A stretch of 64,000 bases of DNA, from contig NIVC01001645.1 of assembly GCA_002269645.1 (NCBI GenBank), forward strand, positions 62,001-126,000, written 5' to 3'. This document shows positions 13,527 to 64,000 of this stretch, in pieces; the stretch's first letter is position 1, and the number at the start of each line of letters is the position of its first letter. The translations under genes were made by a program, and so were the position numbers. This DNA comes from Macrostomum lignano. Lineage: Eukaryota. The notes under the pieces were generated by a model. That model saw only the letters and a list, made by a program, of their open reading frames with translations. It did no database searches and was not told the origin of the DNA.

Positions 13527-13707
13527 GACGTTTGGAGAGTCAGCCGGGGGGCGCACGGAGAGAGTGAGAGAGTCACGCCAATATAGATAACAGTGAGCAC
13601 GCGCAGTTGCCAGTCGCTTTAGATAACAACAGTTGTGAAGCAAATCCGCTAAAGCAGAAGATTAGACGCACACACACACAGCGCGAAGCAACTCACTGAG
13701 CACGAGC

Positions 13708-16074
13708 ATGGCCTGGCAAGACTACGCCGACGAGATCCGGTGGCTGGTGCGCACCGGGGCGCCAATCTCGGTCACGCAGCTGTTCTACTCGCTCGTGATG
13801 CCGACAACCCTGGCCTTCTGCGGCTACCTCGGCAAAGAGGAGCTTGACTCGGCCGGGCTGGCCATCTCAATTTTCCAGCTGAGCGTGGCCAATTTTGCCA
13901 GTGCGGTGCGCTGGGGCATCATGCCGTTCCTGGCGCACACCATGGCCGGCAGCAAGCCAGCTCGGGTTGGCATCTTCGTGCAGCGCGGCCTGCTTGCCTC
14001 CCTGCTGCTGGCCTTCTTCAGCTGGACTCTGGCCTGCAATTCGGCCAATCTGCTAATCGCCACGGGCCAGGACCCGGCCATTGCGGTGAACACTGAGATG
14101 TACTTCCTGCTGCTCAGTCCGGGCTGCCTTGGCATCATCGCATTCAGAGCTCTGGTTGCTTATACTGACACGCTGGGCCGGCTGTGGCCGACTCTGCTGG
14201 TTCACGTGATTGGGTTCTTAGTTAACCTGCTGCTGCAGTACGTGCTGGTGCTGCATACGGACCTGGGCTTGGCCGGCTCGGCGATTGCTCTGTCTGTCAC
14301 CCTGGTTCTGCTGGCCGTGTTTCAGGCCATCTTCATCTGGAGGCTGCGGCTGTACAAGGACACCTGGACGGGCTGGTCGCCGAGGGCCTTCCTGGGCTGG
14401 GGCAAGTTCTTCGGCGGCATGCTGCCCGCCATCGGCACCCAGACGCTGTGGATCTTCGGCACCGAGGTTGGCAATTTTCTAGCCGGACTGCTGGGCAAGT
14501 CGGAGATCGCGGCCGAGTCGCTGCTGTTCCAGATCAACTTCCTGGCCTTCCTGCTGCCCGTGGGGCTGGGCAGTGCCGTCATCGCCAGGGTGGGAGCCTA
14601 CCTCAGGTACGAATGGGGACTGGGGATCAAGCTTAGGGTTATTATGGTGCACCAACTAAGGATCAAGCTTAGGGTTGTTGTGGTGCACCAACTAGGATCA
14701 AGCTTAGGGTTATTGTGGTGCACCAGCTAGGATCAAATTAGCGTTGTGGTGCACCAGCTGGGATCAAATTAGGGTTATTGTGGTGCACCAGCTGATCAAA
14801 TTAGGGTTATTGTGGTGCACCAGCTAGGATCAAATTAGGGTTGTGGTGCACCAGCTGGGATCAAATTAGGGTTATTGTGGTGCACCAGCTGGGATCAAAT
14901 TAGGGTTATTGTGGTGCACCAGCTGGGATCAAATTAGGGTTATTGTGGTGCACCAGCTAGGATCAAATTAGGGTTATTGTGGTGCACCAGCTGATCAAAT
15001 TAGGGTTATTGTGGTGCACCAGCTGATCAAATTTGCGCTAAACCAACCTCAGCCAACAGGAGCCGGAGCGGGCCAAGCGGACCTCCCGCGCCAGCCTGCT
15101 GTTCATGTCCGTCACCGGCCTGCTGGTTGGCGGCATCTTCATGGCGCTGCGGTTCCAGATTCCCAAACTGTACTCGCTGGACGCGGAGTCCACCAGCCTG
15201 TTCGTGAGCCTCATGCCGTACCTGGCGGTGTACACCACTCTGCAGCTCATCGCCTATCCTTGCGTTGCCACCCTGAGAGCCTGCAATCACCATGTAGTTG
15301 CCATGGTGATCAACTTTATTGCCTACTATGTGGTAAGTGGGTCGATTTTTTGGTTGATTTCCCAGCGAACTCACTGAGTCAAATTCCATCGTTGCCCCAC
15401 TGAAGGATTCGAGTCCAGAGCCTTAATTTCGATATTGAAGGATTCGAGTCCAGAACTTTCATTTCTCCACGGATGGATTCAAGTCCAGGACCTTAGGCTT
15501 AACTTATATAGTGAAGGAATCGAGTCCAGGACCTACATCTAAGCGATTCTCAAACACTCAAAACGCAATCTCCTCTACCGCGACACAGGTGAGCCTCCCG
15601 CTGGGTGTCTCCCTGACCTTCGCCGCCGGCTGGGGCCTGCGAGGCCTCTGGGTCGGCTTCGTCTCGGCCTCGGCCACCTTCCTGGTGCTGCTGCTGCTGG
15701 CCATGCTGCGCTCCGACTGGCGCCGGCGCTCCAACCTGGCGCACGCTGACGCCGAGTTCGAGACCGATGCGGAGGCTCCGCTGGCGGCCGGCGAGCGGGC
15801 GCCGCTGCTGATGGCCGAAGAGGACAACGCCGAGGATTGGCAGCTGCTGGATCGTCAACAGAAGCAGCGGCAGCAGCGAGGCAGCAGCAACCGCCAGGTT
15901 TGGTGGCCAGCAGTCCGCGCCAAGCTGCCAGTCCTGGGCGCGGCAGTTCTGGCGCTGCTGGCCTCGGCGATGATTCGAGTGTTGGTGCCGCCGCGGATTC
16001 CGCTGTACCCGATGGCGAATGCCAGCAGCTGGAACTCGACGCTGCCTCCGGTAGCGACACTGACTACTAATTAG
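13708..16074 (+). CDS. slc47: MATE/SLC47-family transporter; exons 13708-14606, 15053-15332, 15589-16074 (554 aa)
   Basis: Multi-TM protein with MATE-like segments EVGNFLAGLLG, RVGAYL(S)QQEPERAK, YYV|VSLPLGVSLTF and GLRGLWVG. GT/AG junctions keep the frame (phase 2, then phase 0). An extra C-terminal hydrophobic helix is present, as in animal MATE1. Confidence 0.9.
14627..15030. repeat. 34-bp minisatellite (CAAATTAGGGTTATTGTGGTGCACCAGCTAGGAT)n filling MATE intron 1
   Basis: Direct reading; occupies about 90% of the 446-bp intron. Confidence 0.92.
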
Positions 16075-23096: not shown

Positions 23097-23609
23097 GTGC
23101 ATAGGGAAGATTTTCAAACTGGGGTTATGGATTTGAAATACGAAGCACTTTTAGCTAAAAAAAAAGACTGGGCTGAGTCATGCAGCCTGCAGCCTCAATT
23201 CCGGGGTCTGGGCTGGCGCTCACTCTGGCTGGAAACCCTCACCAACCACTCGTGCCCCCCTCTCTTGACGATGTCAGACAAAACGGTGATTCACTGATAT
23301 CCTGACAAGACTGATTTACTCGGCGTTTGCTGATAGACCAGCGCAGCTTCCAATAGTTTGCTCTGGAAGTTAATTCAAAGAAAGGTATAGTCAGCAATAA
23401 TTTCCTCTGAAAGAGACCAGCACCTGGGCACTGGACAGTCAACTTGCTGTTGGAGTAAGTTGGAGTAACAGAAGTCGATTAACTTCTATGATAATTCTGC
23501 TTTTTCTTGTCTCATGATCTGCTTTTTCACACCTGCACACACAGGTTACTCTACTGATAGTAGGCGATTGCGCTCAGTTGCCATCAGCCAAAACACAAGC
23601 CGCAGTCGG

Positions 23610-24512
23610 ATGCCTCCAGCTGCACCAACTTTGGCCACGGCAGCGGTTGTGGCAGCCGTAGTCTTTGCTTCATCAGCTGCTCAACCGCCGCCGACAAATT
23701 CGCCGTCGACAATCCGCCGACTGCCGCAGTGCCTGGTGATCGGCGCCAGAAAGTGCGGCACCAGGGCGCTGCTCAACTTCTTGTCGCTGCACCCGCTGGT
23801 GCGGACCGCCCGCGGCGAGGTGCACTACTTTGACAGGCGGGACTACCGCCAGCTGGGCCTGGCCTGGTACCGCAGGCGCATGCCGCCTAGCCGGCCAGAT
23901 CAGGTGACGCTAGAAAAGTCCCCGGCCTACTTTGTCACCCCGTCGGCACCAAGTCGGATTCGCCGGGTCCGGCGCGACATGCGGCTGCTGCTGGTGCTGC
24001 GGGACCCGGTGCGCAGGGTCGTCAGCGACTATGCGCAGCGGCTGCACCGGCGGGCCAGCCAGGGCCGGCCGCCGGTGTCGCTGGAGTCGCTGGTGTTCCG
24101 ACGCGGCGACGGCAGTAGACAGATCGATCCGCGATCGCCGCTAGTGGCCACCTCAGTGTATCACCGGCATCTGGCCCGCTGGCTGGCGGAGTTCCCGCGT
24201 CACCAGCTGCACATCGTTAACGGCGACCGGCTGGTCGAGAAGCCGTTCGAAGAGCTTCGACTGGCTGAACAATTTCTCGGCCTGCCGATCTGCTTCCGGC
24301 CGGAGCAGTTCGTCTACAATGCCAGCAAAGGCTTCTACTGCGCCAGACGGACCGACAACTCCGTGCCGCGCTGCCTCGGCCCCGGCAAAGGTCGTCGACA
24401 TCCGCCGGTGTCGCCGGAGACGCTTGACCGGCTTAGGGCCTACTTTGCTGGCCAAGAGGCCAAGCTGGCGGAACTGCTCCCAGGGCGCAGATTCGCCTGG
24501 ATGAAGCTGTAG
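23610..24512 (+). CDS. hs3st: Heparan sulfate glucosamine 3-O-sulfotransferase (HS3ST1/5-like), single coding exon, 300 aa
   Basis: 5'-PSB motif LVIGARKCGTRALL, EVHYFD, EKSPAYF, 3'-PB motif LRDPVRRVVSDY, KGFYC and CLGPGKGRRHP. Hydrophobic N-terminus after the ATG at 23610; upstream acceptor CACACAG at 23544. Confidence 0.95.
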   Translation: MPPAAPTLATAAVVAAVVFASSAAQPPPTNSPSTIRRLPQCLVIGARKCGTRALLNFLSLHPLVRTARGEVHYFDRRDYRQLGLAWYRRRMPPSRPDQVTLEKSPAYFVTPSAPSRIRRVRRDMRLLLVLRDPVRRVVSDYAQRLHRRASQGRPPVSLESLVFRRGDGSRQIDPRSPLVATSVYHRHLARWLAEFPRHQLHIVNGDRLVEKPFEELRLAEQFLGLPICFRPEQFVYNASKGFYCARRTDNSVPRCLGPGKGRRHPPVSPETLDRLRAYFAGQEAKLAELLPGRRFAWMKL

Positions 24513-28740: not shown

Positions 28741-30300
28741 TTATAATGCGGTGTGGTTGCCGCCACCCTTCTCTTGGGCCTTTATCATAGCCTGAATAGC
28801 CCTAGCTCTCATCTCCAGCTCCATAATCTTTAGCTGGCGTCGGGACATGCCATCCAACGACGGCTGCTGCCGAGGCGGCGGCTGCGGTGCCGGCTCGTCT
28901 TCAACGTCGGACAGGTCGACAACTTCGTTCAGGATGACGCTGTCAGCCTCAGCTTCTGCTACGCTGAAATTCAACAGCTTCACTTCTGCGCCGACTACAT
29001 CTTCTGACTCTTCGTTCGATACCGCAGCTTCTTCTGTCATTGAGTTCGGCTCCGCCTCAGCCTCCGCCTCAGCCTCAGCCTCCGCCTCAGCCTCCGTTTC
29101 TGATTCAACTGTCGCCTCGGAATCTGCTTCTGCCTGACCTTTTACTGACCATTCTACTTCAGATTTGGAGTCTGCAGTTGCAAACTCGATTGCTTTAGTA
29201 TCGTCATCAGCCTTATGGTCTGCCGCTACTTGAGCAGAGAGGGAAGCAGTGAATTTCGCCTCTGTCTGATCCTCAGTTGTTGTTGAATCTGCAGCGGCTA
29301 TCGGCGTGCTGTTGTTAGAAGCAGCTAAATTTGCTTCATCAACAACCGCTTTGGCATCCGCATCCGGTTTCTGCCCAGCGGCCAGAGATTCGTCAGTGTC
29401 AGACGAGCTGATTGACGCGGCGCTGTCGCCGGCTAAAATCCGTCGAATCCGTTTGGCCGACATGCCCTGCAGTAGCGGCAGGCAGCGATCGCGAAGTTTC
29501 GTCAACGGCCAACGTCGAAACTCTTCTGGTACAAGAGCGCGAAGCTGCTGACCCCGAGTGGCGCTGAACATCTGGTGCAGCATCTCCGCCCGGTCGTCCA
29601 GGTAGTCAGCGATCGGTCGCAGGGGCGGACAGCCGGGTTCGGAATTGGCTGCATCAGCATCGGAATCACTGTTCTCATAATGGCAAGGAGCGTTGGAAAC
29701 GGCGGCTACTGCTGAAGTGGCTGGAGAAGACGGCACTGAGGAGGCTGATGATACAGACGATGAAGCACTAGATGTTGAGACAGCGTATGAAGTTGCAAGG
29801 TTTTTAGGCGGCAATTCTTTTGAAGCTTTGCTCACTTTTGTCTTCTTAGAGGCTTTCAATTTTGCCTTTTTGGCCTTCTTATCCTTTTTCTTCTTCTTTT
29901 TCACTGTCTCCGCTTCAACACTGGACTTCTTAAGCTTCTTATGTTTTCTTGTAGCGTTCGAGGAATCAGAGTGAGACGAGTCATCCTCCAGCTGATGACT
30001 TCTACTCACTTTGTGCTTTTTCTTGTCTTTCTTCTTCTTTTTCTGCTTATCCTGGACCGCTATGGTCTTTCGTTTAGCTTCGGACTTCTGCTTGTGATGA
30101 TGCCGTGGCTTCTCTTTCTGCTTCGAGCTGCGCACCACGGCATCTCTTGAAGATGCTGAGGATTTTGACGACTCGCGCTGCTTCCTGCTAGAGACAAGAG
30201 CTGCCGAGGAAGATTCTATTCGCACCTGCTTCCGACTCTTGAGCGAGGGCTCAGCTATTGAAGCTGTCGATGGACGCTTGCCGCTACTGAACTGGTTCAT
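28741..30300 (-). CDS. caap1: Caspase activity and apoptosis inhibitor 1-like protein, intronless, 519 aa
   Basis: LRPIADYLDDRAEMLHQMF...LRDRCLPLLQGMSAKRIRRILAG and C-terminal MELEMRARAI match CAAP1 blocks. Lys/Ser-rich N-terminus and an (EA)n tract. True ATG at 30300 (the track starts at a TTG). Confidence 0.85.
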   Translation of the reverse strand: MNQFSSGKRPSTASIAEPSLKSRKQVRIESSSAALVSSRKQRESSKSSASSRDAVVRSSKQKEKPRHHHKQKSEAKRKTIAVQDKQKKKKKDKKKHKVSRSHQLEDDSSHSDSSNATRKHKKLKKSSVEAETVKKKKKKDKKAKKAKLKASKKTKVSKASKELPPKNLATSYAVSTSSASSSVSSASSVPSSPATSAVAAVSNAPCHYENSDSDADAANSEPGCPPLRPIADYLDDRAEMLHQMFSATRGQQLRALVPEEFRRWPLTKLRDRCLPLLQGMSAKRIRRILAGDSAASISSSDTDESLAAGQKPDADAKAVVDEANLAASNNSTPIAAADSTTTEDQTEAKFTASLSAQVAADHKADDDTKAIEFATADSKSEVEWSVKGQAEADSEATVESETEAEAEAEAEAEAEAEPNSMTEEAAVSNEESEDVVGAEVKLLNFSVAEAEADSVILNEVVDLSDVEDEPAPQPPPRQQPSLDGMSRRQLKIMELEMRARAIQAMIKAQEKGGGNHTAL

Positions 30301-42662: not shown

Positions 42663-42781
42663 AAACCTTTATATTGTCCTTTTATTAAATGACTTTTGTT
42701 GATATTGAAACCTATTTGCATATAACCTTAATCATGGCCATTATTTCAGCTTGACTTTTAAAGTTCAATAAGAAAATAACA

Positions 42782-45092
42782 ATGGCTCCAATGTTAAGTG
42801 CCTACATGTATGCACTGTTCTCATTCCTGATGGTGATTGCCAACAAGCTGCTGCTCACATCTTACCTATTTCCATCGCCTGCCTTTCTCTGCCTAACTCA
42901 AGTCAGCTCTACCTGCTTGTTTTTGTTGACTGCTCGCGCCTTTGGCATTGTCCAATTTGGAGCATCCCTGTCCGATGCTGCTGGGATATTTCCTCTGCCA
43001 ATATATTTCTTTGGCAACCTTGTGTTTGGCCTGTCAGGTACACAGGTAAGATAATTTTCAGCAGCCTAAGCCATAAAAATATGACTTTTAAGTTACATCC
43101 AACAATGATTTATTTATTAATTTATTCATATTATACTCAGTAGAGTAAGCGCCACATACATGCGCGACCTCCAAAGTCGGTCGGCCGTGCGACTTAGTTT
43201 TAACAAAAATGCGATGTAGTTGTTGGCCAAAAATGCAACGTACATGTAAAAAACGCAATTAACACAACTTTGGGTAAACGGCAGGAGTAACTATGACTCC
43301 TGCTATTAACTATAACTATTATCAAGCAAAAATGCCTCGTCAGCTACTTCGTACTACTACTTGGTGTTTTTCGGGTGGGCATTTTTGCGACTTCCATGGT
43401 TGGCCGCCAAATCGGTCGGCCGACTCGGCCGACTGTTGCGCATGTATGAAGCGCCATATAGCAGATGCAGTTTGGGATAATTAGGATTGTGATGACTAGC
43501 TAGATGGCTAAAAATGTGAAGGAATAGAGAATCGGTTTAGAATGGCTTTCATACATGCGCAACCTTGGGAATCACTCGGCCGTTTCTATTGGCAACACAC
43601 ACATGTAAGTCGCTATTGGCTGAGAGCAGTCACGTGACTACTATTCCGTCCAATAGCGACTTACATGTGTGTGTTGCCAATAGAAACGGCCGGGTGAATC
43701 CCTAGGTTTCGCCCAAGCATGCTTGTATTAGTAATCCCAATGTGCATTTTAAATATGACAGTTGGTTCTTTTTGGTGTCTGTCTACCACTGTCCAGTCCA
43801 TTTCTGCCTAGGTAAGAGGACGATTCTCATTTAGCAGTTAGGGGACTATTCTCATGCGCTGGTTAGAGGGATTCTCATGCGCTGGTTAGAGGGATTCTCA
43901 TGCGCTGGTTAGAGGGATTCTCATGCGCTGGTTAGAGGGATTCTCATGCGCTGGTTAGTTCTAAGGATTCTCATGCGGTGGTTAGGATTCTCAAGGGGTG
44001 GTTAGAGGGATTCTCATGAGGTGGTTCGGGGGATTCTCGTGGGGTGGTTAGAGAGATTCTCATGCGGTGGTTAGAAGGATTCTCATGGAGTGGTTCGGAG
44101 AATTCTCATGGGGTGGTTTGGAGGATTCTCATGGAATGGTTCGGAGGATTCTCATGGATTATTTAGAGTCATTATCATGCGGTGGTTGGAGGCATTCTCA
44201 TGCGGTAGTTAGGATTCTCAAGGGGTGGTTAGAGAGATTCTCATGCGATGGTTCGAAGGATTCTCATGGGGTGGTTCGGGGGATTCTCATGGCGTCATGG
44301 GGTGGTTCGGGAGGATTCTCATGGAGTAGTTAAAGGCATTCTCATGCGGCTGATTGTCTCCCCGCTGCTTACAGGCTGAAAAGATGCTACTGAATTCCCC
44401 TTGAATCACTGCAACCAAACTCGCAGGTGGTCAGCCTGCCAATGTTCACCGTGCTTCGCCGGCTCTGCATTCTGATGACCTTTATTGGCGAATTGATTTT
44501 CCTTCAACGTCGCGGCGACAACAGAGGCGTCGGTTTAGCTGTCTTCCTCATGCTGTTGGGCGCTTCCATTGCCGCTATGAACGATTTGACCTTTGACCTG
44601 GCCGGCTACGCATTCCTAATGCTAAACAATTTATTCACAGCTGCCTATGGCATCACATTAAAGTTGAAAACTGGCAGTTTGAGCGGATTGTCAAAGTATG
44701 GGATCCTGTATCACTGCTGCTCCATCGCTGTGCTGCCATGTCTGGCGCTCAACCTGTGGACTGGCGAGTTCTCCAGAGTGGCAGACTACCGCGGCTGGTC
44801 CCTGCCAGTGGTTTGGGCCCTGTTCTGCACCAGCAATCTGTTGCAGCTGTTCCTGCTGTACAGCACCATACAATGCACCGCCGACAATGGCCCCTTAACC
44901 ACCACCGTGATTGGGGTGTTGAAAAATGTTCTAGTCACCTATCTTGGCATGTTTATAGGTCGGGACTATGTGTTCACGTTGCACAATTTTATGGGCCTGA
45001 ATGTTAGCACTCTGGGCGGCGTTTTGTACACTTATTTGACATTTAAGGCGCCTAAGGTTGAGCCTCAGAAAGGTACCATCATTGTGCGCTAG
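42782..45092 (+). CDS. slc35d: Nucleotide-sugar transporter SLC35D1/D2 (fringe connection / sqv-7 family); exons 42782-43045 and 44427-45092 (309 aa)
   Basis: NKLLLTSYLFPS, FPLP, GLSGTQ|VVSLPMFTVLRR, DLTFDLAGY, KYGILY, LTTTVIGVLKN and GRDYVF..NFMGLN. Phase-0 GTAAG / CGCAG junction. Confidence 0.93.
43149..43454. mobile_element. MITE-like element in the SLC35D intron
   Basis: Imperfect TIRs GCGCCACATACATGCGCGAC / GTTGCGCATGTATGAAGCGC; no clear TSD. Confidence 0.55.
43543..43725. mobile_element. Foldback element with a near-perfect stem of about 55 bp; its 5' end resembles the TIR of the 43149 element
   Basis: 43562-43619 is complementary to 43649-43705; begins GGCTTTCATACATGCGCAAC. Confidence 0.6.
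43815..44350. repeat. 23-bp GATTCTCATG-family minisatellite (GATTCTCATGCGCTGGTTAGAGG)n
   Basis: Direct reading. Confidence 0.88.
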
Positions 45093-50505: not shown

Positions 50506-53500
50506 ATGTTTTTAACTCAACACCCGTCCAAGTTCGCAGCAGCATGGCTAGTCCTGGCCGCTGTTCTGTTCTCGGGTTCTCTGGTTGTTCTCGGACGAGG
50601 CGACAACGTCTGGCGGGACGAGTTGACGCTGCTGCAGGCTCGGGTTGCGGCCGCCTGCCTGACCAACTTCAGCTACGCCGAACTGGCTGAACAGGTGAGT
50701 CAATGCGAGATGTAGAGAGCTCTGTTATCATTAGGCTGGACTTTCTGCCGCAGGTCAGGGCAAAAGACGGCCGGGCAGCCAGCAGAGGCAAGCAGTCATG
50801 TCCGTTCCGCTGACCCCTCGGCACGCTGCAGGCAAACACTCGTAGGGTGTGTACAGCAGCCCTGACTTTCTCATCGTCCAGGCATGTACACTCTGTGCCT
50901 TGGGGGTTGGCCATCATGGGCGAGAATCGCATTGTACGAATCTTCAGGTTATCCTTTCCTTATCCTTTTTTTCTACAGGGTTTGAAATTTCCGTCAAGTT
51001 TCCTCCAAGATCTTCATCTTGGTTCTGCCCCTTTCAGATCTTTTCAGGCTGAGCATCGCTACTCTCTCAAATCTTCGAGGTAGTTAATTTTATGTGGAGA
51101 TTTTCTACTGGTTTACAAGTATTTTGCAAAAAATTCAGTTTCTTAGACAGTTTTGAGTTTTTTCTGAAGATTATAAATCATTCCTTTTCGTTAGTGTAGC
51201 AGTTATCAGAGAAATATACTTAATTCGACAAAACATGAACAACCAGTGTATATGATTCAGACATGCAGGTATCAAATGCAGCAATAGGGCTTTAGTCCGT
51301 TGTAAACCTTGAATTCAACCATTTGACATTTTCGATGCTGCACTGCTTGCAGGCTTTGCGCATTAATCGTGTTTTGACGCATGCAGCTTTGACCCTGGAG
51401 CATTTTATCTCTAAATTCTAATTAGCTAGCTAATCGTTGTCTGAGCATCGTAAATAACTTGACTTGTAAGTATCTTCTATTTCTGTGCTTGCACCAGGAC
51501 ATGATAATACGCGTTTAGGCTCGTGATCTTTGGGCGTAACCTATATGGTTAATTTATTTTTTGCTAGCGGAAGTCGTTAGGTCTGATTTGGGATGAAAAT
51601 GCGCTTGAATGAATATCCATCAGAAATGACTTCGTGCACGAGTAAGGCGGCAAAGAAGAGCAGGACGAAATTGTGAACACGGCAGAACAGTTTTTCATTG
51701 AGGACACAAAAAGAGCGGGAAAATTGTCTTTGACGACACAAGAAACAACTTGGGCACAAGAGATAACTGAACAGTGCATTCTGAAAAAGACACAAGAAAC
51801 AACTTGGGCACAAGAGATGACTGAACAGTGCATTCTGAAAAAGACACAAGAAACAACTTGGGCACAAGAGATGACTGAACAGTGCATTCTGAAAAAGACA
51901 CAAGAAACAACTTGGGCACAAGAAATGACTGAACAGTGCATTCTGAAAAAGACACAAGAAACAACTTGGGCACAAGAGATGACTGAACAGTGCATTCTGA
52001 AAAAGACACAAGAAACAACTTGGGCACAAGAGATGACTGAACAGTGCATTCTGAAAAAGACACAAGAAACAACTTGGGCACAAGAGATGACTGAACAGTG
52101 CATTCTGAAAAAGACACAAGAAACAACTTGGGCACAAGAGATGACTGAACAGTGCATTCTGAAAAAGACACAAGAAATAAGAACTGAAAAATGTTCTTGA
52201 AGGCACAAAAATAATGGGAATCTCTCATCCAGTACACGAGATTTTACATAGATTGAGTAACTGAAGGCTCAAGAACTAAAAGTCCGTTATTGAAGACAAA
52301 AATCATGGAAGCACAAGAGAACTCGGCAATGCAGTGTCCTGGAAGACACAAGAGAACTCGGCAATGCAGTGTCCTGGAAGACACAAGAGAACTCGGTAGT
52401 GCAGTGTCCTGGAAGACACAAGAAAACTAGGCAGTGCAGTGTCCTGGAAGACACAAGAGAACTCGGCAGTGCAGTGTCCTGGAAGACACAAGAAAACTAG
52501 GCAGTGCAGTGTCCTGGAAGACACAAGAAAACTAGGCAGTGCAGTGTCCTGGAAGACACAAGAAAACTAGGCAGTGCAGTGTCCTGGAAGACACAAGAAA
52601 ACTAGGCAGTGCAGTGTCCTGGAAGACTCAAGAAAACTAGGCAGTGCAGTGTCCTGGAAGACACAGGGGAACTCGGCAGTGCAGTGTCCTGGAAGACACA
52701 AGAAAACTAGGCAGTGCAGTGTCCTGGAAGACACAAGAAAACTAGGCAGTGCAGTGTCCTGGAAGACACAAGAAAACTAGGCAGTGCAGTGTCCTGGAAG
52801 ACACAAGAAAACTAGGCAGTGCAGTGTCCTGGAAGACTCGAGAAAACTAGGCAGTGCAGTGTCCTGGAAGACACAGGAGAACTCGGCAGTGCAGTGTCCT
52901 GGAAGACACAGGAGAACTCGGTAGTGCAGTGTCCTGGAAGACACAGGAGAACTCGGTAGTGCAGTGTTTTGGAAGACAAACGCAGGCTAGCAGACTGCAG
53001 TCTTTGAAGATCGCTAAAAGTTCTAGCAAAGGCACTGGTAGCTGTGTGCCAGCAGCAAGATCCCCTTGGTGCACGCAGCTTCCCTCATTAGCAACGATGC
53101 AAAAGACAGATATTTTTGCCGATGGCGCTACTACAACAATCTTAATAAACTATTAGCATAAACCTTGTCAATCACCCTTGGTGCAACAACTGCCACGCGA
53201 TGGAGTTCACTCGGACGCCATGCGAATTGAAGGCTGAACTTTCTTACGCGTGCGCGTGTTGCTTGATTTTCCTTGAGAGAATTTGTTATTGCAGTGCGTC
53301 ATGAAAGGTTGTTGAAGTTCCTATACTAAAAATCAAGACAAGGATAACTTCAGAATCTTATGTAGCCTGTTTCCAATATCCCACGGCCGTGTTTACACTG
53401 AACTGCAGCCTCAACCTCCTGTGCAGCAGATACAGATCGCCTACTTGCCCTGAAGCGAAGCACAAATGTCTAAACAAATCAGCCAGACTGTGAAAAGTAC

Positions 53501-56500
53501 CAATTTTGCAGCGAAGCCTTGCGTTAACACATGGCCGACTCCTAAAGGGTACCAACTGCCAGAACAGAGCGGCCTGCGTTCAATCAGTCTTCGTGGCAGC
53601 AAAAATTGATTTGTCAGCAAGCAAACAGAATGGAAGGATTCTGCATGGTGTCCCACCACTGCAGCTGGTCCCGATCGAAAGTATAGAAAGAGAAACTGCC
53701 TCTAGCTGGGCCTTGTTCAACAATGCCAAGATAAAAATCTCAAGTGGCTATTGATCTCCTAATGACACTTTGCACTTTAGCTTTGCGCCCGGCCAGAAAT
53801 TATTGGAGCTAGAACAGCTAGAACAGCACACACTAAGGGTTACGCTACTAACGCTGTCACGTGCGGTGTCCTGGTGGGTCCTGCAGTGATATCCTATACT
53901 GCCTACACGCAGATTGTGTCCTTGATGTGAGCTGTATCTGGGGCGCTATCAAAAAGTAACGCTCTTATTCTTTTTGAGTGTGGGATAGGTCTTGCCCGTT
54001 CCTGGTACCCCCCTCCCCGATCCACTCCTGACATCGATCCCATTATGAGCTCGATGTCTTTAAAAGCAATAATGGTTTACACCCTACTGAACTTAAATTG
54101 ATTTCTGATCTCAAAAATTTTCCAACTCGTCTTCCAGGGCGGAGTTCACAGCGAGTCTGACGTAGCCGGAGACCAACTGCTTCTTCGTTGCCGTCTCAAA
54201 GCTGATTGTGCCGCCGTAAGTGCGCAATGTTATGGTTTTATGTACGCTCTGCACTGTCAGTCGTTATATTTTCGACCTCGTTAAAAGACGTCTATCTACG
54301 AGTATATTACATTTTTTGGATATCAGAATCAATGATGCCAATTCGAGTAGACAACTGCATCAGGGACTCAGAGTTCTCAAGCTTGGTTTCAAAGACGTGT
54401 TCAAACATCACCTAAATAATGGACCTTTGTAGACCTGTCTGGGCTTTAACTGAAGAGAGAACCTTTACAGATTGCTGAATGATTATAAAAAGGTACGATG
54501 CGATTTTCTTAAAAGTAAAGAATCCTAGCCTTAGAAAGTCGTCACAATTCTCTGGAAAAATCAGGAATATCTGTTTCCAGGCCAAGTCTCCAGAGGTCCA
54601 AGGCTTAAGTAAAGTGCCAGTCACTCTGCACTAAAATTATTTGAAAAAAACTCTTTATTATGCAAGGACTACAGGTATAAAAAAGGACTTTCCACCTTCA
54701 AATCTACAGTGGTTTTTCGGAAGTCCAATAATCTTGCTAGGGGTAGGGTGTAAACCATGGTACACCTTGGTTTGACCATGGGGTTTTACGGTAGAAAATT
54801 CAGAAGTTTAAAATCCATTAAAAATAATACAGCGGAGGCATGAGAAATCTGCAATTTTTAGGGTTCATAACACCAAAAGCTACACAAGACCTTGATTTCA
54901 AAGTGAATGCTTGAACCTTTGTTGATTAGAAATTTAGGCCCAGTGAAAGCGCCCAGCAAATCAGACAACATTGGATCCAACCAACGCTGGATGAGTCAGT
55001 GAGTAGCAGCTTGAGCTTGAGCCGAATTTAAGCCAAAAGCAGTCAAGTTTTCTTTCTAATTTATTCCGCCGCAGAAGAAACTGCCCGATCTTTTACCAAT
55101 TTTTCCAATCGCTTCTAGGAGGGGTGACTCACACCCAGGAAAAAGATTGAGCCGTCTGTGGAATCTCCACCCCCCATCGATGAATCCCTTCTTCCCCCCA
55201 CCCCCGCATCGGCTGTCTCCCAGGATGATGAGTAAAGTTACGCTGCGTAAAACAACACAACGGCACAACACGATGAAGCATTAGAGGAGTCTGGACTGGC
55301 TATAAGCATCATAGTTTTGTTAGCATTATAAGCTGCGGGGGAATGAGGAGGGTCAAATGACTCACGCAGTTCCCCACGGAAGTCTGCGACGCGACCCTCG
55401 TGTACGCTGTTTATATGTCTTACACGACAGAGCAGATTGCGTCATTCTCAATTGCTTTTTCCTCCCCGAATCTTTCCTCCGCCCACCAATTGCTCTTGAG
55501 CAGTGCTGGAACGCTTCGCTCTGGGATCCGCGGAAAACTCAGGAGGCTGACTGCGAGAAACTGTGCTCGGTGAGTGCTTAGGCTTTATTTTTCGAAATTC
55601 TGTATTTATTAATTTTCTGTTTTTACGTTTCAACTAGAGGGATCTGTCAGGAGTTTTATGTTACTAAATTTTGTGCCACTCAGATTGTCATGGAGACAGC
55701 CTGTAAGAATGTTAAGCGATTGCAAATCTTGTATGAGTATAAGCGAGTTGAAGTGACCCGACATCATACGTGTAAAATTGACATGTCTATTGCTTAGATG
55801 GCGTCTGTAGCCTAGTGGTTAGAGCAGAGGTCGGAGAACTCCGACCCGCAAAGCCTCTCTATCCGGCCCTCGGGTCCCTTGAAACTTCACAAAAGCAATC
55901 CGGCCCGCTCAGGGTCTCTTCTCAGCTCTCTTATACCTTCTCTCGATCCTCTCTCCACTTGTTTCCCTCCTCTCTCCCCTTTTCTTTCGTTTCTCTTCGC
56001 TCCTCTCTCATCTCATCTTCTTTCTTATATCTTCTCTTCTTTCCTCTCTCATCTCTCCTCTCATCTCTCTCGCCTTTCCCTCTCTTCTCTCATCTCTCGT
56101 TTCATCTTTCATCTTCTTTCTCTTCTCTACTTCCTCTCCCCTCCTCTCATCTGGCTCGCAGCCATTAGCAAGGTTCTTTACCTGGACCTTGAGGAAAACA
56201 AGTTTGCCGACCTCTGGGTCAGAGCGTCGGACTCACGACGGAAAGGTCGGAAGTTCGATTCTTGACCCACTCGGAACAATTTGTCTCCTTGAGCAAGACA
56301 ACTCTGCATTGCTTCAGTTCACCCAGCTGTAAAATGGGTGCCAGCATTAGCTGGGGTAATTGAGGGTGTGTGGCGACCCCCCCCCCCCAATCCTTGGACT
56401 GAACAGCCGTACGCAGCCTTTAGATAGGTGCACATCTGTCCATCAGGGCAGGTGTAATAAAAATGCTTGAAAATACACGACCTACGAACTATAGTTGGAT

Positions 56501-59500
56501 CTCAACGCAACGACGCTTGTAATAAATTGCAGCAAAATTACCGAGTGTTGAAATGCAACTGCAGGCGCAAAAAAACTTTTTCCAACTTAAGCCACGAGTA
56601 AATCGAGAGAGACAGATTACAGATACGTTTGGGTCCTATAGAGCCTGAGAAAATTCGGAATAGCGAATGATGCAGCGAGTCGCTTTGCTAAGGACGTTTT
56701 TTCCACTTACAGTAGCAGCAGTCGCATATCTACATGCAAAATCTCTACACGTAACAAAAAATCGCCACACCGAAGAACTCGACTGGCTGCCTCGGTTCCT
56801 GCTGCCAACTGTCGGCACTGTTCCACCAGCCGCAGCCCCCGGAGGTCAGAACTCTGCCGCCAGTGCCGCTCGTATCGGTGCGCAACGGCCAGCTGCACTT
56901 TGACGGTGTTGACTGGACGAAGCGACGAGGAACAGCGGTGCAGCTGGTGCTGGCCGTGCAGGCTCGGTTTGATTCTGTCGACTCTGGTGGGCAGACCGGC
57001 AGCAGCGGCTGGCGCAACCTCAGCCTGCTGGCCGGCGGTCCCGGACCCGTCCGGCTGGAGGAGCCCCGGCCGGGCCATCGCTACCAGTTCCGGGCGGCCG
57101 CGGTGTCTCCCGATGGCAGTCGGGGCTTTGGAAAACCGTCGGAGCCGCTGACGTTGCTGCCATTGCAGTCGACAAGGCCGCCAGCTGTCCGGCTGAGCGG
57201 CGGCCCAGCCAGCTTCGATGAGTCGACGGCGGCCGGCTGGGCCAGCGTGGCCGTCTGGTGGTCGCTGATCAATGGCAGTGTTGGCGACACGGAGTACGGC
57301 TTTCAGGTAGGCTGCTTACAGGTAGGTTGCTTACAGGTAGATTGCTTACAGGTAGGTTGCTTACAGGTAGGTTGCTTACAGGTAGGTTGCTTACAGGTAG
57401 GTTGCTTACAGGTAGGTTGCTTACAGGTAGGTTGCTTACAGGTAGGTTGCTTACAGGTAGGTTGCTTACAGGTACATGTAGGTTGCTTACAGGTACATGT
57501 AGGTTGCTTACAGGTAGGTTGCTTACAGGTAGGTTGTTTACAGGTAGGTTGCTTACAGGTAGGTTGCTTACAGGTAGGTTGCTTACAGGTAGGTTGCTTA
57601 CAGGTAGGTTGCTTACAGGTAGGTTGCTTACAGGTAGGTTGCTTACAGGTAGGTTGCTTACAGGTAGGTTGCTTACAGGTAGGTTGCTTACAGGTAGGTT
57701 GCTTACAGGTAGGTTGCTTACAGGTAGGTTGCTTACAGGTAGGTTGCTTACAGGTAGGTTGCTTACAGGTAGGTTGCTTACAGGTAGGTTGCTTACAGGT
57801 AGGTTGCTTACAGGTAGGTTGCTTACAGGTAGGTTGCTTACAGGTTGGTTGTTTACAGGTAGCGCCTTATCGAACTCGTTGCCTATAGCTATAAACAGAT
57901 TTTGCAGATTTGCCTTTTACATGGTGTAAAAAAATTGGAGTTTACCATAGTTTAAAAAGTCTTAGTTAAGAATAAAGGAATCAACTGAAGTGATGGGAAC
58001 AACCGAAATTTCTTGCTTGATTTGAATTTGGATACATACTTGTAACAAACGATGTCTCTCAGATTAAACAGAAGTGTTTTACAGGTTATTCGCAATTTAT
58101 TTCAACCTTTTCACCCGCTGCTGGCAGGTTAGCTGGGCCAAAGCCGCAGCTGGTGTGGATGAGCCGTCTACTGCTAATTCAGCTGTGAAGATATCGCAGT
58201 CACTGCCTGGAGTGAGTTATGGAGTTGATACTTAGGTAACTATGGTAATTACGATACTTACCCTGCATTGCCATTTTCTTTCAACTTTTTCAGACGGCAA
58301 GAAGTTACCAGATCGAACAACTTGAGCCCGATTCACTGTATCACATTGAGGTGCGTGTATTGAGCACAGGTCTATTGAGCACTGTTTCACACAGCTACTA
58401 ACAGTAGGAATAAAGGGTACTTCAATATTATGATCTAAAACATTGAAAATTCGCCATCCTTTGCGCCGATAAGCGACTGGCCTTTTAGCTCGTACGAGAA
58501 GTTTGTTATAATAAACAAAATTTTTTTAGAATTTCCTGTCAAGTCTATGACTATTCAAGCTTCGTGTAGCTTGTTGATCTTGTACTGTCAATTTTGATAA
58601 TTTCTTAAAGAAAATCATGTTTAAAGCAGAACAGCATCAGCCCTGAGAGCCAGCTATCTAATCTAAGATATCAGCCTCCCCTGTGAACTTTTTGGCCTAC
58701 CAACAACTCCCAATTGATCCTTGGCATCTGAGCCTGACGCTTGATGCCTTACGCAGGGACTACTTAAACTAGTTTAAGTAAATGGCCTTAAGTGGCCTTA
58801 CGATTAGAAAGTCAGGGCCGCTGTACACCCTGCCTGAGTACAGTATTGGCGCGTATGTTATGTGCTCAGGAGACTGCAGAATGTCGCCGAAGGTGTTGCG
58901 CCAGTGTGCCCGCAGCCCCCCTGCAATTATTGATTATTTCTGACACGCCCAGGTTCGCTCCCTGACCGCCAGCGGCATCTCAGGCCCGCCCAGCCGCATC
59001 AGCGTCAGCACCGCCAGACAGCCACCGCCCGCCACCTCTTGGCTTCAAGACCGGGCAGGTGGGAGCTCCTCCAAGAGTAGTGACAACGGCGGCTGTCCAC
59101 CTGACGATGACAAGTCGTATCAAACCTACACGCCGAGGACCAGCTTCGCGGACAATGCTGACGGCGTTGTAGCCACGGTAGGCCTGCTGACCGCCGGTTC
59201 CGGTCAGCCGATATTTCTGTTAGAGTGGCGGCGACGCGTCTGCATCGGGGCGCGCGGCGTTGGCGCCAGCGCGGCTTTGTCTGGCGCCATTCTTACGACT
59301 GCCCAAGAGGTGACTGCCAAAAGATTGGCTTTCTTATCTTTGTCACGCATGTAGAATTCGAAACTAAATTGCTCCAAATTTTCGAAAATTTCAAATGCAA
59401 ACAAATACTATTAGCTAATACCACACACCACAAACCACAAATACTAAAAAGCGGTTTTACTGCTGGTGTATCTCGCTTGGCTTGTGTCTGGAAAGTTCAT

Positions 59501-59852
59501 ATTAAAACATTAGCAGTATTTGCTAAATAAGTTGGAACCGCACGAACCTCGCTTTCAGCTGCGCAACTCGACAGTGCGCCTGGGCGGCCTGGAGTTCAAC
59601 TGCCACTACTGGGCTCGCCTAACGGCACTGCCCCACCGGCATCGGAAGTCTGTGCCATCGTCGATGCCTGCGCTGCCAAGGCCGAGGAAAACTGCTGCCG
59701 TCGAGTGGTGCTTTGTCACCCCGGCTGACTGCCGTGGCCGGCCTGGCTGCGGACCAGAAAGTGAGGAATCTGGTGAGAATTATTAATTAGTTAGTTAGTT
59801 AGTCAGTTAATTAGTTAGTTAGTTAGTTAGTTAGTTAATTAGTTAGTTAGTC

Positions 59853-59909
<57 letters not shown>

Positions 59910-59968
59910 ATTAGTTAGTTAGTCAGTTAGTCAGTTAGTTAGTTAATTAGTTAGTTAGTTAGTTAGTC

Positions 59969-60021
<53 letters not shown>

Positions 60022-60188
60022 ATTAGTTAGTTAGTCAGTTAGTCAGTTAGTTAGTTAGTCAGTTAGTCAGTTAGTTAGTTAGTTAGTTAATTAGTTAGTT
60101 AGTCAGTTAGTCAGTTAGTTAGTTAGTTAGTTAGTCAGTTAGTTAATTAGTTAGTTAGTCAGTTAGTCAGTTAGTCAGTTAGTTAGTC

Positions 60189-60231
<43 letters not shown>

Positions 60232-60232
60232 C

Positions 60233-60287
<55 letters not shown>

Positions 60288-60288
60288 C

Positions 60289-60367
<79 letters not shown>

Positions 60368-60368
60368 C

Positions 60369-60414
<46 letters not shown>

Positions 60415-62676
60415 ATATTTTATATATTATATTTTAGAAAATGCTTTGCTTAGAAACTTAATCAATCACAGCGTGTATGTAGCGAACAAATTGCTTTCGA
60501 AAAAAATGCAAAAATATCAGTTTCACTGCTTCATTGATTTTGCCAAAGCTTCAGTTGAAGGCTGGGTTGAAGCAGAGCCTTCAGATTCTTAGAAGGAACG
60601 ATTCGCATTGGCATTAAGCATATTAAGCATATTCTGTAGTACATGTAAACTAAAGTGAATGCACATTTCGTTGACATATACAGTGATGCACAGAGGTTGC
60701 ACAGTGACCCTGACTTTCACAGCGCCCGACATTTTACAGGCGTAATACCGCTGAGCTGATCAGCCCTTGTGGTATCCATCTTTCTCTTAATTTGAAAAGC
60801 CTAAATGCAGCTGTTTATGCTTGTATACGAGTATAATAGTCTTTACTGTAATTTTTTGTCTCCTCAGTGCTCACTATAGCTAAGAACTTTCCCACCTGAC
60901 CAGGTCCACCGACGGCACCAACTGGACTTGACGTGCAGCCCCTAGCTGGCTCCGTTCAAAACCAACCCGGCTGCCTTGTTACCTGGCGACAGCCTCATTC
61001 CGGATGGCGGGCTCCATCCGCTTATCGAATCGTCTGGAGTCCCAGGCTGGACGACTCGGTAATTCCGGATGTCTCCGGCGCCTCGCCGCTGCAGCCGCGC
61101 ATCGATCCGGAGCGGGCGAGAACAAGAGTGGTTGACAAGGTAAACTACCTTTCGGAAACTACGTTACATTACATTTATTCCTTGAGGGTTCTCTCACAGC
61201 TTGGGCAGAGTTCGAACACAATTCAACATAAATTCATATTTTTCAGACAGTCACACGCCTGACAATACGGCCGCTCAACAGGGCGACTCTTTATATTGTG
61301 AAGGTCCGCAGCCTCGCATTCCAAGCCAACGGCAATGTGCTCGCTAGCAACGATGTCACGCAGCTCTGCGCTACCGACGGCTTTCTCAGCCTGAAAAGTT
61401 CGGGCAGCGCTGCGGCGGCCATCCAGCACAGGACGGCATTTAACGGTGAGCCAACAGTTCACAGCGATGCTTCAGCCAGCGTCAGCCACTAGCTCACAGC
61501 AGACTGTCAGACATCATCTCACAGCAAACTGTCAGACACTAGCTCACAGCAGACTGTCAGCTACTAGCTCACAGCAAACTGTCAGACACTAGCTCACAGC
61601 AGACTGTCAGACATCATCTCACAGCAAACTGTCAGACACTAGCTCACAGCAGACTGTCAGACATCATCTCACAGCAAACTGTCAGACACTAGCTCACAGC
61701 AGACTGTCAGCTACTAGCTCACAGCAAACTGTCAGACACTAGCTCACAGCAGACTGTCAGACATCATCTCACAGCAAACTGTCAGACACTAGCTCACAGC
61801 AGACTGTCAGCTACTAGCTTACAGCAAACTGTCAGACACTAGCTCACAGCAGACTGTCAGCTACTAGCTCACAGCAAACTGTCAGACACTAGCTCACAGC
61901 AGACTGTCAGCTACTAGCTTACAGCAAACTGTCAGACACTAGCTCACAGCAGACTGTCAGACATAATCTCACAGCAAACTGTCAGCCACTAGCTCACAGC
62001 AGACTGTCAGCCACTAGCTCACAGCAGACTGTCAGACACTAGCTCACAGCAAACTGTCAGACACTAGCTCACAGCAAACTGTCAGACACTAGCTCACAGC
62101 AAACTATCAGCCACTAGCTCACAGCAAACTGTCAGACACTAGATCACAGCAAACTGTCAGACACTAGCTCACAGCAAACTGTCAGCCACTAGCTCACAGC
62201 AAACTATCAGACACTAGATCACAGCAAACTGTCAGACACTAGCTCACAGCAAACTATCAGCCACTAGCTCACAGCAAACTGTCAGACACTAGATCACAGC
62301 AAACTGTCAGCTACTAGCTTACAGCAAACTGTCAGACACTAGCTCACAGCAGACTGTCAGCTACTAGCTCACAGCAAACTGTCAGACACTAGCTCACAGC
62401 AGACTGTCAGCTACTAGCTTACAGCAAACTGTCAGACACTAGCTCACAGCAGACTGTCAGACACTAGCTCACAGAAAACTGTCAGACACCATCTCACAGC
62501 AGACTGTCAGACACCATGCTACTCAGAATAATTCCGAAAAATCCAAAATTTCAGGCGACTACTCACAGTTCTTGGCAGCGGGCCAGAGTCCAGTACTAAA
62601 TATCGGATCCGACTTAATAAAACAATTATGTATGTTGTTTCTTTGCGCCACAACTTTGCTAGTATTGTTGCGTTAG
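50506..62676 (+). CDS. anos1: Anosmin-1 (KAL1)-like protein, 710 aa: signal peptide, Cys-box, four FN3 domains, hydrophobic C-terminus; exons 50506-50694, 54138-54215, 55504-55569, 56776-57306, 58128-58211, 58294-58350, 58953-59309, 59559-59772, 60904-61139, 61247-61445, 62555-62676
   Basis: LLQARVAAACL resembles KAL1 VQRARCASRCL; RCRLKADCAA|C resembles WCQNHKQCSKC; GCLGSCCQL resembles ECLTSCEFL; PRPGHRYQFRAAAVSPDGSRGFGKPS resembles [33 protein letters not shown] and CFVTPADC resemble LSFSCKY and FFTTPPC. Eleven GT-AG exons join into an open 2133-nt frame. Confidence 0.85.
51733..52190. repeat. 54-bp minisatellite (about 8.5 copies) in anosmin-like intron 1
   Basis: ACACAAGAAACAACTTGGGC recurs at 51736, 51790 and so on. 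Confidence 0.93.
52305..52980. repeat. 35-bp minisatellite (CAGTGCAGTGTCCTGGAAGACACAAGAAAACTAGG)n
   Basis: Direct reading. Confidence 0.93.
55800..56463 (+). mobile_element. tRNA-derived CORE-type SINE interrupted by a hAT MITE
   Basis: A-box TAGCCTAGTGGTTAGAGC; B-box AGTTCGATTC at about 56252. Body GTCTCCTTGAGCAAGACA..CATTGCTTCAGTTCACCCAGCTGTAAAATGGGT resembles the MIR/CORE domain. The 3' boundary is approximate. Confidence 0.75.
55825..56216 (-). mobile_element. hAT (Charlie/Buster-type) MITE, 392 bp, CT-rich interior
   Basis: TIRs CAGAGGTCGGAGAACT / AGTTTGCCGACCTCTG (14/16 match); 8-bp TSD GGTTAGAG / GGTCAGAG. Confidence 0.85.
57303..57862. repeat. 15-bp minisatellite (CAGGTAGGTTGCTTA)n starting at a 5' splice site
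   Basis: About 37 units; the first unit overlaps the donor at 57307. Confidence 0.96.
59787..60415. repeat. (TTAG)n microsatellite, about 630 bp
   Basis: Direct reading. Confidence 0.97.
61485..62515. repeat. 26-bp minisatellite (CACTAGCTCACAGCAGACTGTCAGAC)n filling the last anosmin-like intron
   Basis: Direct reading. Confidence 0.95.
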
Positions 62677-64000
62677 CTTTACAGTGTACATGTTCCTTTT
62701 TTAATGATGCTTTTACAGACTAAAACAGCAAACATCGAATTTTGAGTGCACAGTCTCTGCTGCCATTCGTACAATCTGTACTGCAATCTTAACACATTTA
62801 AAAATACACATCATTCTGATTCGCATGCAATTCTTCAAAACGATTACGGTATTGCTGTATATGTACGCTTAAGTATCAGTAAGTCAGTCGAATGTTACCG
62901 CAGATCAATTGATTTAAAAAAACAACGGATGTCATACTTTTACAATCAAATCGGGTGTAGCTGTGGTATACTTACAGCTTCAGATAATTGCAGTAGATTA
63001 TATCACTGCAGTTAAATGCATATGCATGTCTATATACATGTATTGTAGTTGTGCTTAAGCTCATCAGTAAATCAAATACATGGATTTAGTTAACTAGTTC
63101 CCTGTTTACGCCGTCTACATGCAGCTAATCAGTGAACATATACTCGTAGCTACAGATAAGGTCTTCGTGTCAGAGCTGACATGTGAGTTGACACATGCTA
63201 CACATTTTGGTAGAGACAGTTTAAATCTAACCGGCGTAAAACACACGAGACAATAACATGTATTGGCTGAAATTTATAGCTATAACTAATACACAGTCAA
63301 TGCAATCCCAAAACCTAAAACCCAGTTGAGACAAACTCAGACAAGGAACCACTGAAGTAACGCTGTCGCTAAGTGTACATGTATCATCGAACGAGAGTTT
63401 GAATGAATCAAAGTCATGCCCTTGACCTGAAGAAGAGAGAAAGGACGCAAAACGAAGGGGCAGCCAGTCAGTTTATTAGCAGAGGAGAGGTTAAAGAATA
63501 ATGATAAGTGCCAAAAAGAGCAAAGTGTAGTGTGAGCATCTTTTGCGATAGCCTTGTATTCTATTAGTTAGGTTTTGCATTATTGTTATTGAATTATTAT
63601 TTTGCTTTAGTTTAGTCATACGTTTTTGGTGTACTTTTTCCTTGTTAGTTAGAATCAATTTTGCGTAAACAGGTTAGAGTTAGACGCCAATTTTGTGACT
63701 CAGCGGAGGGTTGAGTTTTTGTCTGCGAACCCCAGCTTTGCGCGGCCAGCCAACCAGAACCGGCCTGGACCCTGGCACGCGGCAAGTTTCAATTCTACCC
63801 GGCGCCGCGGGCACAATACAATTCGGCTTAAGCAAGCGGCCGGCCAGACGACCACCACCCGGCTTGAGGGGGTTTTGAGTGGTTGTGACTCTGACTATAT
63901 ATGAAAGTGTGTTTGGCAATCGGATCTCGCCCTTCTCTCCTCGCCTTCAATTCTCTTTCCTGCTCCGTCCCCGGTTTTGATTGTGTTCCAGCTTCCCGGC

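Follow-up and report, generated by a model that had tools for sequence, protein, structure and literature searches.

A predicted glycosylphosphatidylinositol-type C-terminal tail in a divergent anosmin of Macrostomum lignano

Known members of the anosmin (KAL-1/ANOS1) family carry two to four tandem FN3 domains. A C-terminal glycosylphosphatidylinositol (GPI) anchoring site has been predicted for KAL-1 of Caenorhabditis elegans, and invertebrate anosmins are described as having no His-rich region (reviewed in PMC3580776). In the planarian Schmidtea mediterranea, the legend of Fig. 3d of Wang et al. (Nat Commun 2026, PMC12932670) refers to a 'putative GPI anchor site' of Anos1a, a protein recently tied to RoboA in the same paper. 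For both KAL-1 of C. elegans and Anos1a of planarians, the site is described solely as predicted or putative (PMC3580776, PMC12932670), and our literature search for Macrostomum together with anosmin found no paper. Here we describe an anosmin-like gene of M. lignano with a predicted hydrophobic C-terminal tail, located at 50506-62676 on the forward (+) strand of a stretch of 64,000 nucleotides (assembly GCA_002269645.1, contig NIVC01001645.1, positions 62,001 to 126,000), which is called the window below and to which all coordinates refer unless another locus is named.

The gene was modelled as ten exons spanning 12 kb, with GT-AG ends at every intron and compatible phases throughout, and its predicted product of 685 amino acids begins with a signal peptide, followed by a degenerate WAP-like motif and four FN3 domains; a disordered linker then leads to a hydrophobic helix at the C-terminus. 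Judged by alignments, by motif matches and by the FN3 array recovered with AlphaFold2 and Foldseek, the window gene is a divergent paralogue of the anosmin family. Because of this membership and of the predicted anatomy of a GPI signal, membrane tethering is the best reading of the predicted C-terminus. The chain as a whole, that is an anosmin with a GPI-type tail, including the use of the last exon and the anchoring of the protein, is in our judgement probable, a view that we hold with some caution.

Family membership of the predicted protein

Comparison of the predicted protein with the PDB showed that its best sequence match was human anosmin-1 (1zlg, E = 3e-8), aligned across the end of the WAP region and FN3-1. 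A HMMER search against 1.84 billion representatives gave 34 matches. Some of them were fragments from M. lignano, and a trailing set consisted of generic FN3-repeat proteins; the others belonged to flatworms, nemerteans and nematodes, and several of these, from Fasciola hepatica, Clonorchis, Taenia, Sparganum and Lineus, are labelled Anosmin-1 or 'Kallmann syndrome 1 sequence'. A sequence-only reading made earlier on this DNA had called the gene anosmin-like, and the match to 1zlg, the named relatives and the alignments uphold that name.

The N-terminus holds a hydrophobic core, FAAAWLVLAAVLFSGSLVVLG (residues 10-30, Kyte-Doolittle values up to 2.68), which by hydropathy is a predicted signal peptide and which aligns with the signal peptides of the relatives. 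The FN3-1 signature RYQFRAAAVSPDGSRGFGKPS corresponds to the family pattern (W/R)YQFR.AAV..G.RGF, with G186, Y189, G200 and G203 near-invariant in the alignment. In FN3-3, the motifs WRRRVCIG, LEFNCHY and WCFVTPADC correspond in part to W.P.VCIE, LRFNC.Y and CFCTPSC of the family, the second cysteine of CFC being replaced by a valine, and C407, C444, C487 and C493 fall in near-invariant columns. The AlphaFold2 model, run on an alignment of 16 sequences, contains four tandem beta-sandwich blocks (residues 118-230, 242-330, 372-482 and 507-621), followed by a linker (623-664) with a predicted local distance difference test (pLDDT) score below 50 and a helix at 664-684. The top Foldseek matches of this model were four-domain FN3 fragments, and the anosmin-1 model (1zlg) stood at rank 8. 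The C-terminus is hydrophobic, in contrast to the basic, His-rich end of the vertebrate members; the absence of such an end is compatible with membership, since invertebrate members are without the HR region (PMC3580776).

Two elements of the family layout are incomplete at the N-terminal side. The first motif of the CR region is present as ARVAAACLTNF (A.C.A.CL..F in the relatives), and the CR block of about 100 residues that follows it is a gap in the alignment; an exon coding for it may have been missed inside the first intron, which is 4.8 kb long. The WAP region reads QC-x16-C-x3-C-x5-C-x3-CC followed by QLSALFHQ, so that the last two of the eight cysteines of the reference pattern (C...C-x3-C-x5-C-x5/6-CC-x3-C-x3-C) are missing, and the segment (55501-55569 and 56776-56830) is, as far as can be read from its sequence, a remnant and an incomplete domain. 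In the AlphaFold2 model it has a pLDDT below 50 (residues 68-109).

These losses could be those of a decaying or non-functional paralogue, the C-terminus of which would have no biological role. Such a state would agree with the absent CR region, with the truncated WAP-like motif and its low pLDDT, with the AT-rich codons of the tail and with our protein searches, in which the gene had no PAA-accession (Mlig_3_7) protein. It is at odds with ten open exons joined by canonical, phase-compatible splice sites across 12 kb, with four FN3 domains predicted with good confidence, and with the retention of the family motifs RYQFRAAAV...GSRGFG, RRVCIG, LEFNCHY and YRIVWSPR, and we judge it very improbable.

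The last splice junction and the C-terminal tail

On the + strand, exon 9 (61247-61445) ends in phase 1 with ...TTTAACG (CATTTAACG) and is followed by gtgagc, the GT of the donor lying at 61446-61447. The acceptor of the last intron is ccaaaatttcag (aatttcag|GC), with its AG at 62553-62554, and the terminal coding exon (62555-62676) begins with GCGACTAC. Splicing of the donor AACG|gtgagc (61445) to the acceptor at 62555 gives ...TAFNGDYSQFLAAGQSPVLNIGSDLIKQLCMLFLCATTLLVLLR, with a TAG stop at 62674-62676, and translation of this join gives ...IQHRTAFN-G-DYSQFLAAGQSPVLNIGSDLIKQLCMLFLCATTLLVLLR, which can also be written ...IQHRTAFNGDYSQFLAAGQSPVLNIGSDLIKQLCMLFLCATTLLVLLR. The terminal exon encodes G646-R685, GDYSQFLAAGQSPVLNIGSDLIKQLCMLFLCATTLLVLLR. 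Direct reading thus reproduced to the base the junction of the sequence-only reading (a phase-1 donor at 61446 and an acceptor at 62554), and the translated join yielded the tail peptide that it had proposed, with 15 hydrophobic residues at its end (L670-L684).

The last intron (61446-62554, 1109 bases) consists almost entirely of a 25-bp minisatellite, present in 41 copies at 61481-62514. The acceptor at 62555 is the sole one of the TTTCAG type within 1.2 kb downstream of the donor, and use of the in-phase alternatives at 62450, 62453, 62468, 62486, 62579 or 62594 would leave the tail unchanged. Retention of the intron would end the protein with ...NGEPTVHSDASASVSH (also ...TAFNGEPTVHSDASASVSH) at a stop at 61490-61492. 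The UniProt fragment A0A1I8G1E9 of M. lignano (184 amino acids) covers the last three exons and is 100% identical to our model over the junction and the tail; the same splice was thus picked by an independent automated annotation.

A hydropathy scan (windows of 15 residues, Kyte-Doolittle value of at least 2.0) found only two hydrophobic segments in the 685-residue protein, residues 10-30 and the last 17 residues as delimited by the scan windows. By hydropathy, then, the protein has an N-terminal signal for entry into the endoplasmic reticulum and no internal transmembrane segment. The C-terminal segment LCMLFLCATTLLVLL (62626-62670, L670-L684) has 15 residues, within the usual 12 to 20 or so of a GPI signal, with a mean Kyte-Doolittle value of 2.73, and a single arginine follows it in place of a cytoplasmic domain. 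Upstream, in the candidate omega-site region (62575-62607), a rule-of-thumb assessment retained two triplets with small residues at the omega and omega+2 positions. N661-I-G663 (62599-62607) is separated from the hydrophobic segment by the polar six-residue spacer SDLIKQ and lies 24 residues from the C-terminus, and A653-A-G655 (62575-62583) has a spacer of 14 residues and lies 32 residues from it. When all open reading frames of at least 40 codons in the six frames of the whole window were passed through a loose GPI-like filter, 4 of 731 frame ends passed, that of the window gene included; at this rate (about 0.5%), chance is an unlikely source of a tail where the family predicts one.

A short terminal hydrophobic run with small-residue triplets upstream is an established hallmark of GPI signals. 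By its predicted sequence, the C-terminus has the anatomy of a textbook GPI-attachment signal, and for a conventional transmembrane protein the segment would be too short and too close to the end; on the same rule-of-thumb grounds (two hydrophobic segments, omega triplets, spacer), the earlier description of the tail as GPI-signal-like is borne out. A permanent single-pass anchor, in a type I protein with a cytoplasmic end of one residue and no exchange for GPI, would agree with the single continuous helix that AlphaFold2 predicts at 664-684, and hydropathy by itself cannot tell the two cases apart. Its strictly hydrophobic run would nevertheless be only 15 residues long, which is short for a stable span of the bilayer, and would stop one residue before the C-terminus; the small-residue triplets stand upstream at the usual distance, and relatives are annotated as GPI proteins (PMC3580776, PMC12932670). 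We consider a type I anchor very unlikely and prefer the GPI signal.

The presence of the tail in orthologues, which the sequence-only reading had named as a check, was found in trematodes, cestodes, a nemertean and a nematode, and in a paralogue of the same species. This paralogue, Mlig028549 (PAA52203.1, 784 amino acids), carries the Pfam domains Ig_ANOS1 and fn3, is more canonical than the window protein, and has the tail ...KYIHLAAGPALHAVCARLLALCVWASLTAAFLS. The exon that encodes its last FN3 also encodes this tail, which therefore requires no inference of a splice; a conserved intron ahead of the tail was sought in this gene and is absent from it. The motif Y-x-x-(x)-LAAG is common to its tail and to DYSQFLAAG of the window protein. 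Among the trematodes, hydrophobic tails are present in Fasciola hepatica, F. gigantica, Echinostoma, two Opisthorchis/Clonorchis paralogues, two Heterobilharzia paralogues and Paragonimus, and among the cestodes in Spirometra/Sparganum, Schistocephalus and Taenia crassiceps. Others are found in the nemertean Lineus longissimus (three RefSeq isoforms), the nematode Caenorhabditis angaria and the products of two Logan contigs of about 3 kb. The tails of the relatives come straight after the last FN3, behind stretches rich in Ser, Thr, Ala, Gly and Asn, and where a relative has no tail, its model is in most cases truncated or fused to a neighbouring EF-hand gene. Most full-length protostome anosmins surveyed bear a hydrophobic C-terminal tail.

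The sequence-only reading had set the tail against a canonical anosmin-1 that is secreted and has no anchor; this contrast stands for vertebrates and does not extend further, since KAL-1 of C. elegans and Anos1a of planarians have predicted GPI sites. The novelty that it implied for a tethered anosmin was lost to these published predictions (PMC3580776, PMC12932670) and to the tails of most full-length protostome anosmins. A GPI-type tail is ordinary among invertebrate anosmins, the idea is already published, and the Macrostomum gene adds one member.

Several observations weigh against the use of the terminal exon as modelled. No transcript evidence was found for the junction 61445^62555, the protein search with the last two exons matching only the UniProt cluster, and in the protein searches the window gene matched only older UniProt fragments and no Mlig_3_7 (PAA-accession) protein. 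The Mlig_3_7 annotation is one that we take to be transcriptome-based. The codon usage of the terminal exon resembles non-coding background, at -0.77 log2 per codon for the exon and -1.47 for its tail half, compared with +0.30 to +0.80 for seven of the nine other exons and +0.06 and -0.27 for two short ones. Since the hydrophobic residues demand T-rich codons and the sample is of 39 codons only, this result is a caveat and no refutation. The T-rich sequence gives hydrophobic peptides in other frames as well, and one UniProt model from a second genomic copy, A0A1I8GIT7, ends with ...NSWQRARVQY, a different frame of the same terminal exon. No AATAAA or ATTAAA is present on the + strand at 62677-64000; the only nearby AATAAA lies within the terminal exon, at 62616-62621, 53 nucleotides upstream of the stop. 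Finally, the minisatellite intron contains about 120 cryptic AG sites, use of which would give short hydrophilic ends.

In a rival explanation, the terminal exon would not be the main 3' end of the gene, either because the intron is retained, because a cryptic acceptor in the minisatellite is used or because the true exon lies past the window. The product would then be a secreted, untethered anosmin, and the hydrophobic reading frame a by-product of a T-rich 3' flank. The background-like codon usage, with a GC content of 0.33 in the tail half, is in line with this explanation, as are the absence of a canonical poly(A) signal past the stop and its presence within the exon, the abundance of AG sites in the 25-bp repeat, and the lack of a transcript-derived protein of the locus in the databases searched. 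It has to contend with a sole TTTCAG acceptor, in the correct phase, after a consensus GTGAG donor, with the low frequency of GPI-like ends by chance (about 0.5% of the frame ends of the window), with the presence of such a tail straight after the last FN3 in the paralogue and in most protostome orthologues, with the LAAG motif common to the paralogue, and with an independent gene model that has the identical junction. We regard it as unlikely, and the terminal exon at 62555-62676 remains our preferred 3' end.

If the terminal exon is used, the product would enter the endoplasmic reticulum by means of its N-terminal signal peptide, with an ectodomain made of the degenerate WAP-like motif and the four FN3 domains, followed by the disordered linker, rich in Ser, Ala and Gly. 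The 40 residues of the last exon would then act as the GPI signal, with AAG (653-655) or NIG (661-663) as the omega site, a short polar spacer and the hydrophobic end of 15 residues. The GPI transamidase would cut at the omega site and move the protein onto the GPI lipid. The cell that makes the protein would then carry the FN3 array on its outer leaflet, and the array could work there, at short range, together with heparan-sulfate proteoglycans and receptors. The sequence-only reading had proposed that such a protein would be a co-receptor or an adhesion molecule and not a diffusible ligand. Use of the exon in the mRNA, cleavage, lipid attachment and function are steps that we only infer.

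The gene model and the surrounding window

The upstream exons, all on the + strand, were placed as follows. Exon 1 (50506-50694) contains the ATG, the signal peptide and the N-terminal anosmin motif ARVAAACLTNF and ends with the phase 0 donor ACAG|gtgagt. The degenerate WAP-like motif begins in exon 2 (55501-55569), which encodes its first half, QCWNASLWDPRKTQEADCEKLCS; the acceptor of this exon was picked on phase and pyrimidine tract, and no other boundary of the model is less certain. Exon 3 (56776-57306), to which the M. lignano model P0035 is identical, holds the rest of this motif (NSTGCLGSCC), FN3-1 with its anosmin signature and the start of FN3-2. Exon 4 (58128-58211, VSWAKAAAGVDEPSTANSAVKISQSLPG), in the middle of FN3-2, was recovered by means of P0035, and exon 5 (58294-58350, TARSYQIEQLEPDSLYHIE) encodes a further portion of FN3-2. 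Exon 6 (58953-59309) completes FN3-2 and continues through a linker into FN3-3, of which it encodes the first half (...IFLLEWRRRVCIG...). Exon 7 (59559-59772), for which an alternative acceptor at 59532 is possible, supplies the other half of FN3-3 (LEFNCHYWARL) together with the inter-domain motif WCFVTPADC, and its end is in phase 1. FN3-4 is divided between two exons. Exon 8 (60904-61139), to which P0036 (A0A1I8G1E9) is identical, encodes its first half (...YRIVWSPRLDDSV...RIDPERARTRVVDK), and exon 9 encodes its second half (LYIVKVRSL...), starts the Ser/Ala-rich linker and ends with the phase 1 donor described above.

Comparison with the M. lignano proteins in UniProt showed that two fragments, A0A1I8GHQ7 (259 amino acids) and A0A1I8G1E9, are 100% identical substrings of the 685-residue model. 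Two others derive from the second genomic copy. In tblastn, A0A1I8JQ10 ('Apple domain-containing') switches frame repeatedly against the locus at 50565-59747, and A0A1I8GIT7 requires an intron of 11 nucleotides, which we judged implausible. This frame-hopping is probably caused by indel errors of the older assembly. A PAN/Apple domain, which the A0A1I8JQ10 reading KLDCAAFSVPAANCQALF suggests, was considered and dropped given the anosmin homology and the WAP-like C-x3-C-x5-C-x3-CC of the window. An exact look-up of A0A1I8JQ10, and of the HS3ST protein of the window described below, in the contig collection gave no match. For annotation, this means that the gene is at present represented in M. 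lignano by fragmentary models and that the models of the second copy are frame-hopping artefacts, one of them mislabelled as an 'Apple domain' protein.

Of the nine introns in the anosmin-like gene, four contain long tandem arrays, and minisatellites are plentiful elsewhere in the window too. Intron 1 contains a 54-bp unit in 8 copies (51735-52177) and a 35-bp unit in 19 copies (52306-52978). The other arrays have units of 15 bp (38 copies, 57299-57862), TTAG (158 copies, 59783-60414) and 25 bp (the 41 copies of the last intron). The same minisatellite-rich habit of the genome is seen downstream of Mlig028549 (locus L001), where units of about 27 bp (...gggccagttctcatgacatcttag...) are repeated in tandem at 29740-29900 of that locus.

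Other genes were recognised in the window. A single-exon gene at 23514-24512 (+) encodes a heparan sulfate glucosamine 3-O-sulfotransferase (HS3ST, E = 3.7e-70 to HS3ST1); it lies 26 kb upstream of the anosmin-like gene, a member of a heparan-sulfate-binding family, and this proximity is possibly a coincidence. An exon at 3705-4520 (+) encodes the SIX domain and homeodomain of a homeobox protein of the SIX1/2 type (E = 1e-80 to human SIX1). Multi-exon reading frames at 13666-16071 (+) and 42755-45089 (+) resemble, from translations inspected by eye, a MATE-type efflux transporter and a nucleotide-sugar transporter, respectively. ARAGORN made two overlapping tRNA-Pro calls of 95 nucleotides at 4696-4855 (+), by a short tandem repeat that begins at about 4804, and these are probably false positives. 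An Rfam scan of the window gave no match.

Comparison with described anosmins

The tail occurs widely among protostomes, which suggests that, of the two forms of anosmin, the anchored one is older. Hydrophobic ends of the GPI type are the rule among the protostome anosmins surveyed, and the secreted vertebrate protein, held by heparan sulfate, may be derived. A fuller scenario can be drawn, in which a GPI-type anchor would be ancestral or general in protostome, perhaps bilaterian, anosmins and vertebrates would have swapped in a basic, His-rich end that binds heparan sulfate. In this scenario the Macrostomum paralogue, which has shed the CR region and half of the WAP domain but retains the FN3 array and the anchor, would have been neofunctionalised as a co-receptor confined to the cell surface, for instance in a Robo or FGFR pathway as suggested for planarian Anos1a. 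We offer it tentatively and think it somewhat doubtful. If the anchor is real, this flatworm anosmin would act at or near the cell that produces it, which would bear on anosmin-type patterning of neurons and of stem-cell fates in regenerating flatworms.

Of the described proteins, C. elegans KAL-1 resembles the window protein in its signal peptide, in an FN3 with YQFR.AAV...G.GF, in the absence of a His-rich C-terminus and in its hydrophobic end. Its Caenorhabditis angaria orthologue CAI5438560.1, used here as a stand-in, has the tail ...STSTSKNILIFPIFFIFFRIFQ. KAL-1 has a CR region, a full WAP domain with eight cysteines and three FN3 domains, whereas the window protein has no CR region, a WAP remnant and four FN3 domains. 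Anosmin1a of S. mediterranea, which like the window protein comes from a flatworm, has WAP and FN domains together with a putative GPI site (PMC12932670), and planarians and M. lignano alike have several anosmin paralogues. It differs in that a phenotype under RNA interference and a partnership with RoboA have been reported for it (PMC12932670), whereas the Macrostomum gene is known from its sequence alone, and the likeness is one of description.

Within M. lignano, Mlig028549 has the same layout as the window protein after the WAP domain and shares the LAAG motif of the tail. The two proteins are only about 23% identical, and Mlig028549 differs by a full CR region, by a tail encoded in the exon of the last FN3, by GC-rich tail codons and, unlike the window gene, by an ATTAAA about 50 nucleotides past the stop. 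Human anosmin-1 (ANOS1/KAL1; 1zlg) likewise has four FN3 domains, and its FN3-1 motif aligns with that of the window protein, but it is secreted and has a basic, His-rich end, a CR region and a complete WAP domain (PMC3580776). The contactins offer an analogy only, since they form a separate family with Ig domains, no WAP domain and no anosmin motifs; their GPI-held FN3 ectodomains act as co-receptors, as we propose for the window protein, and contactin FN3 fragments were found among both the fold and the sequence matches.

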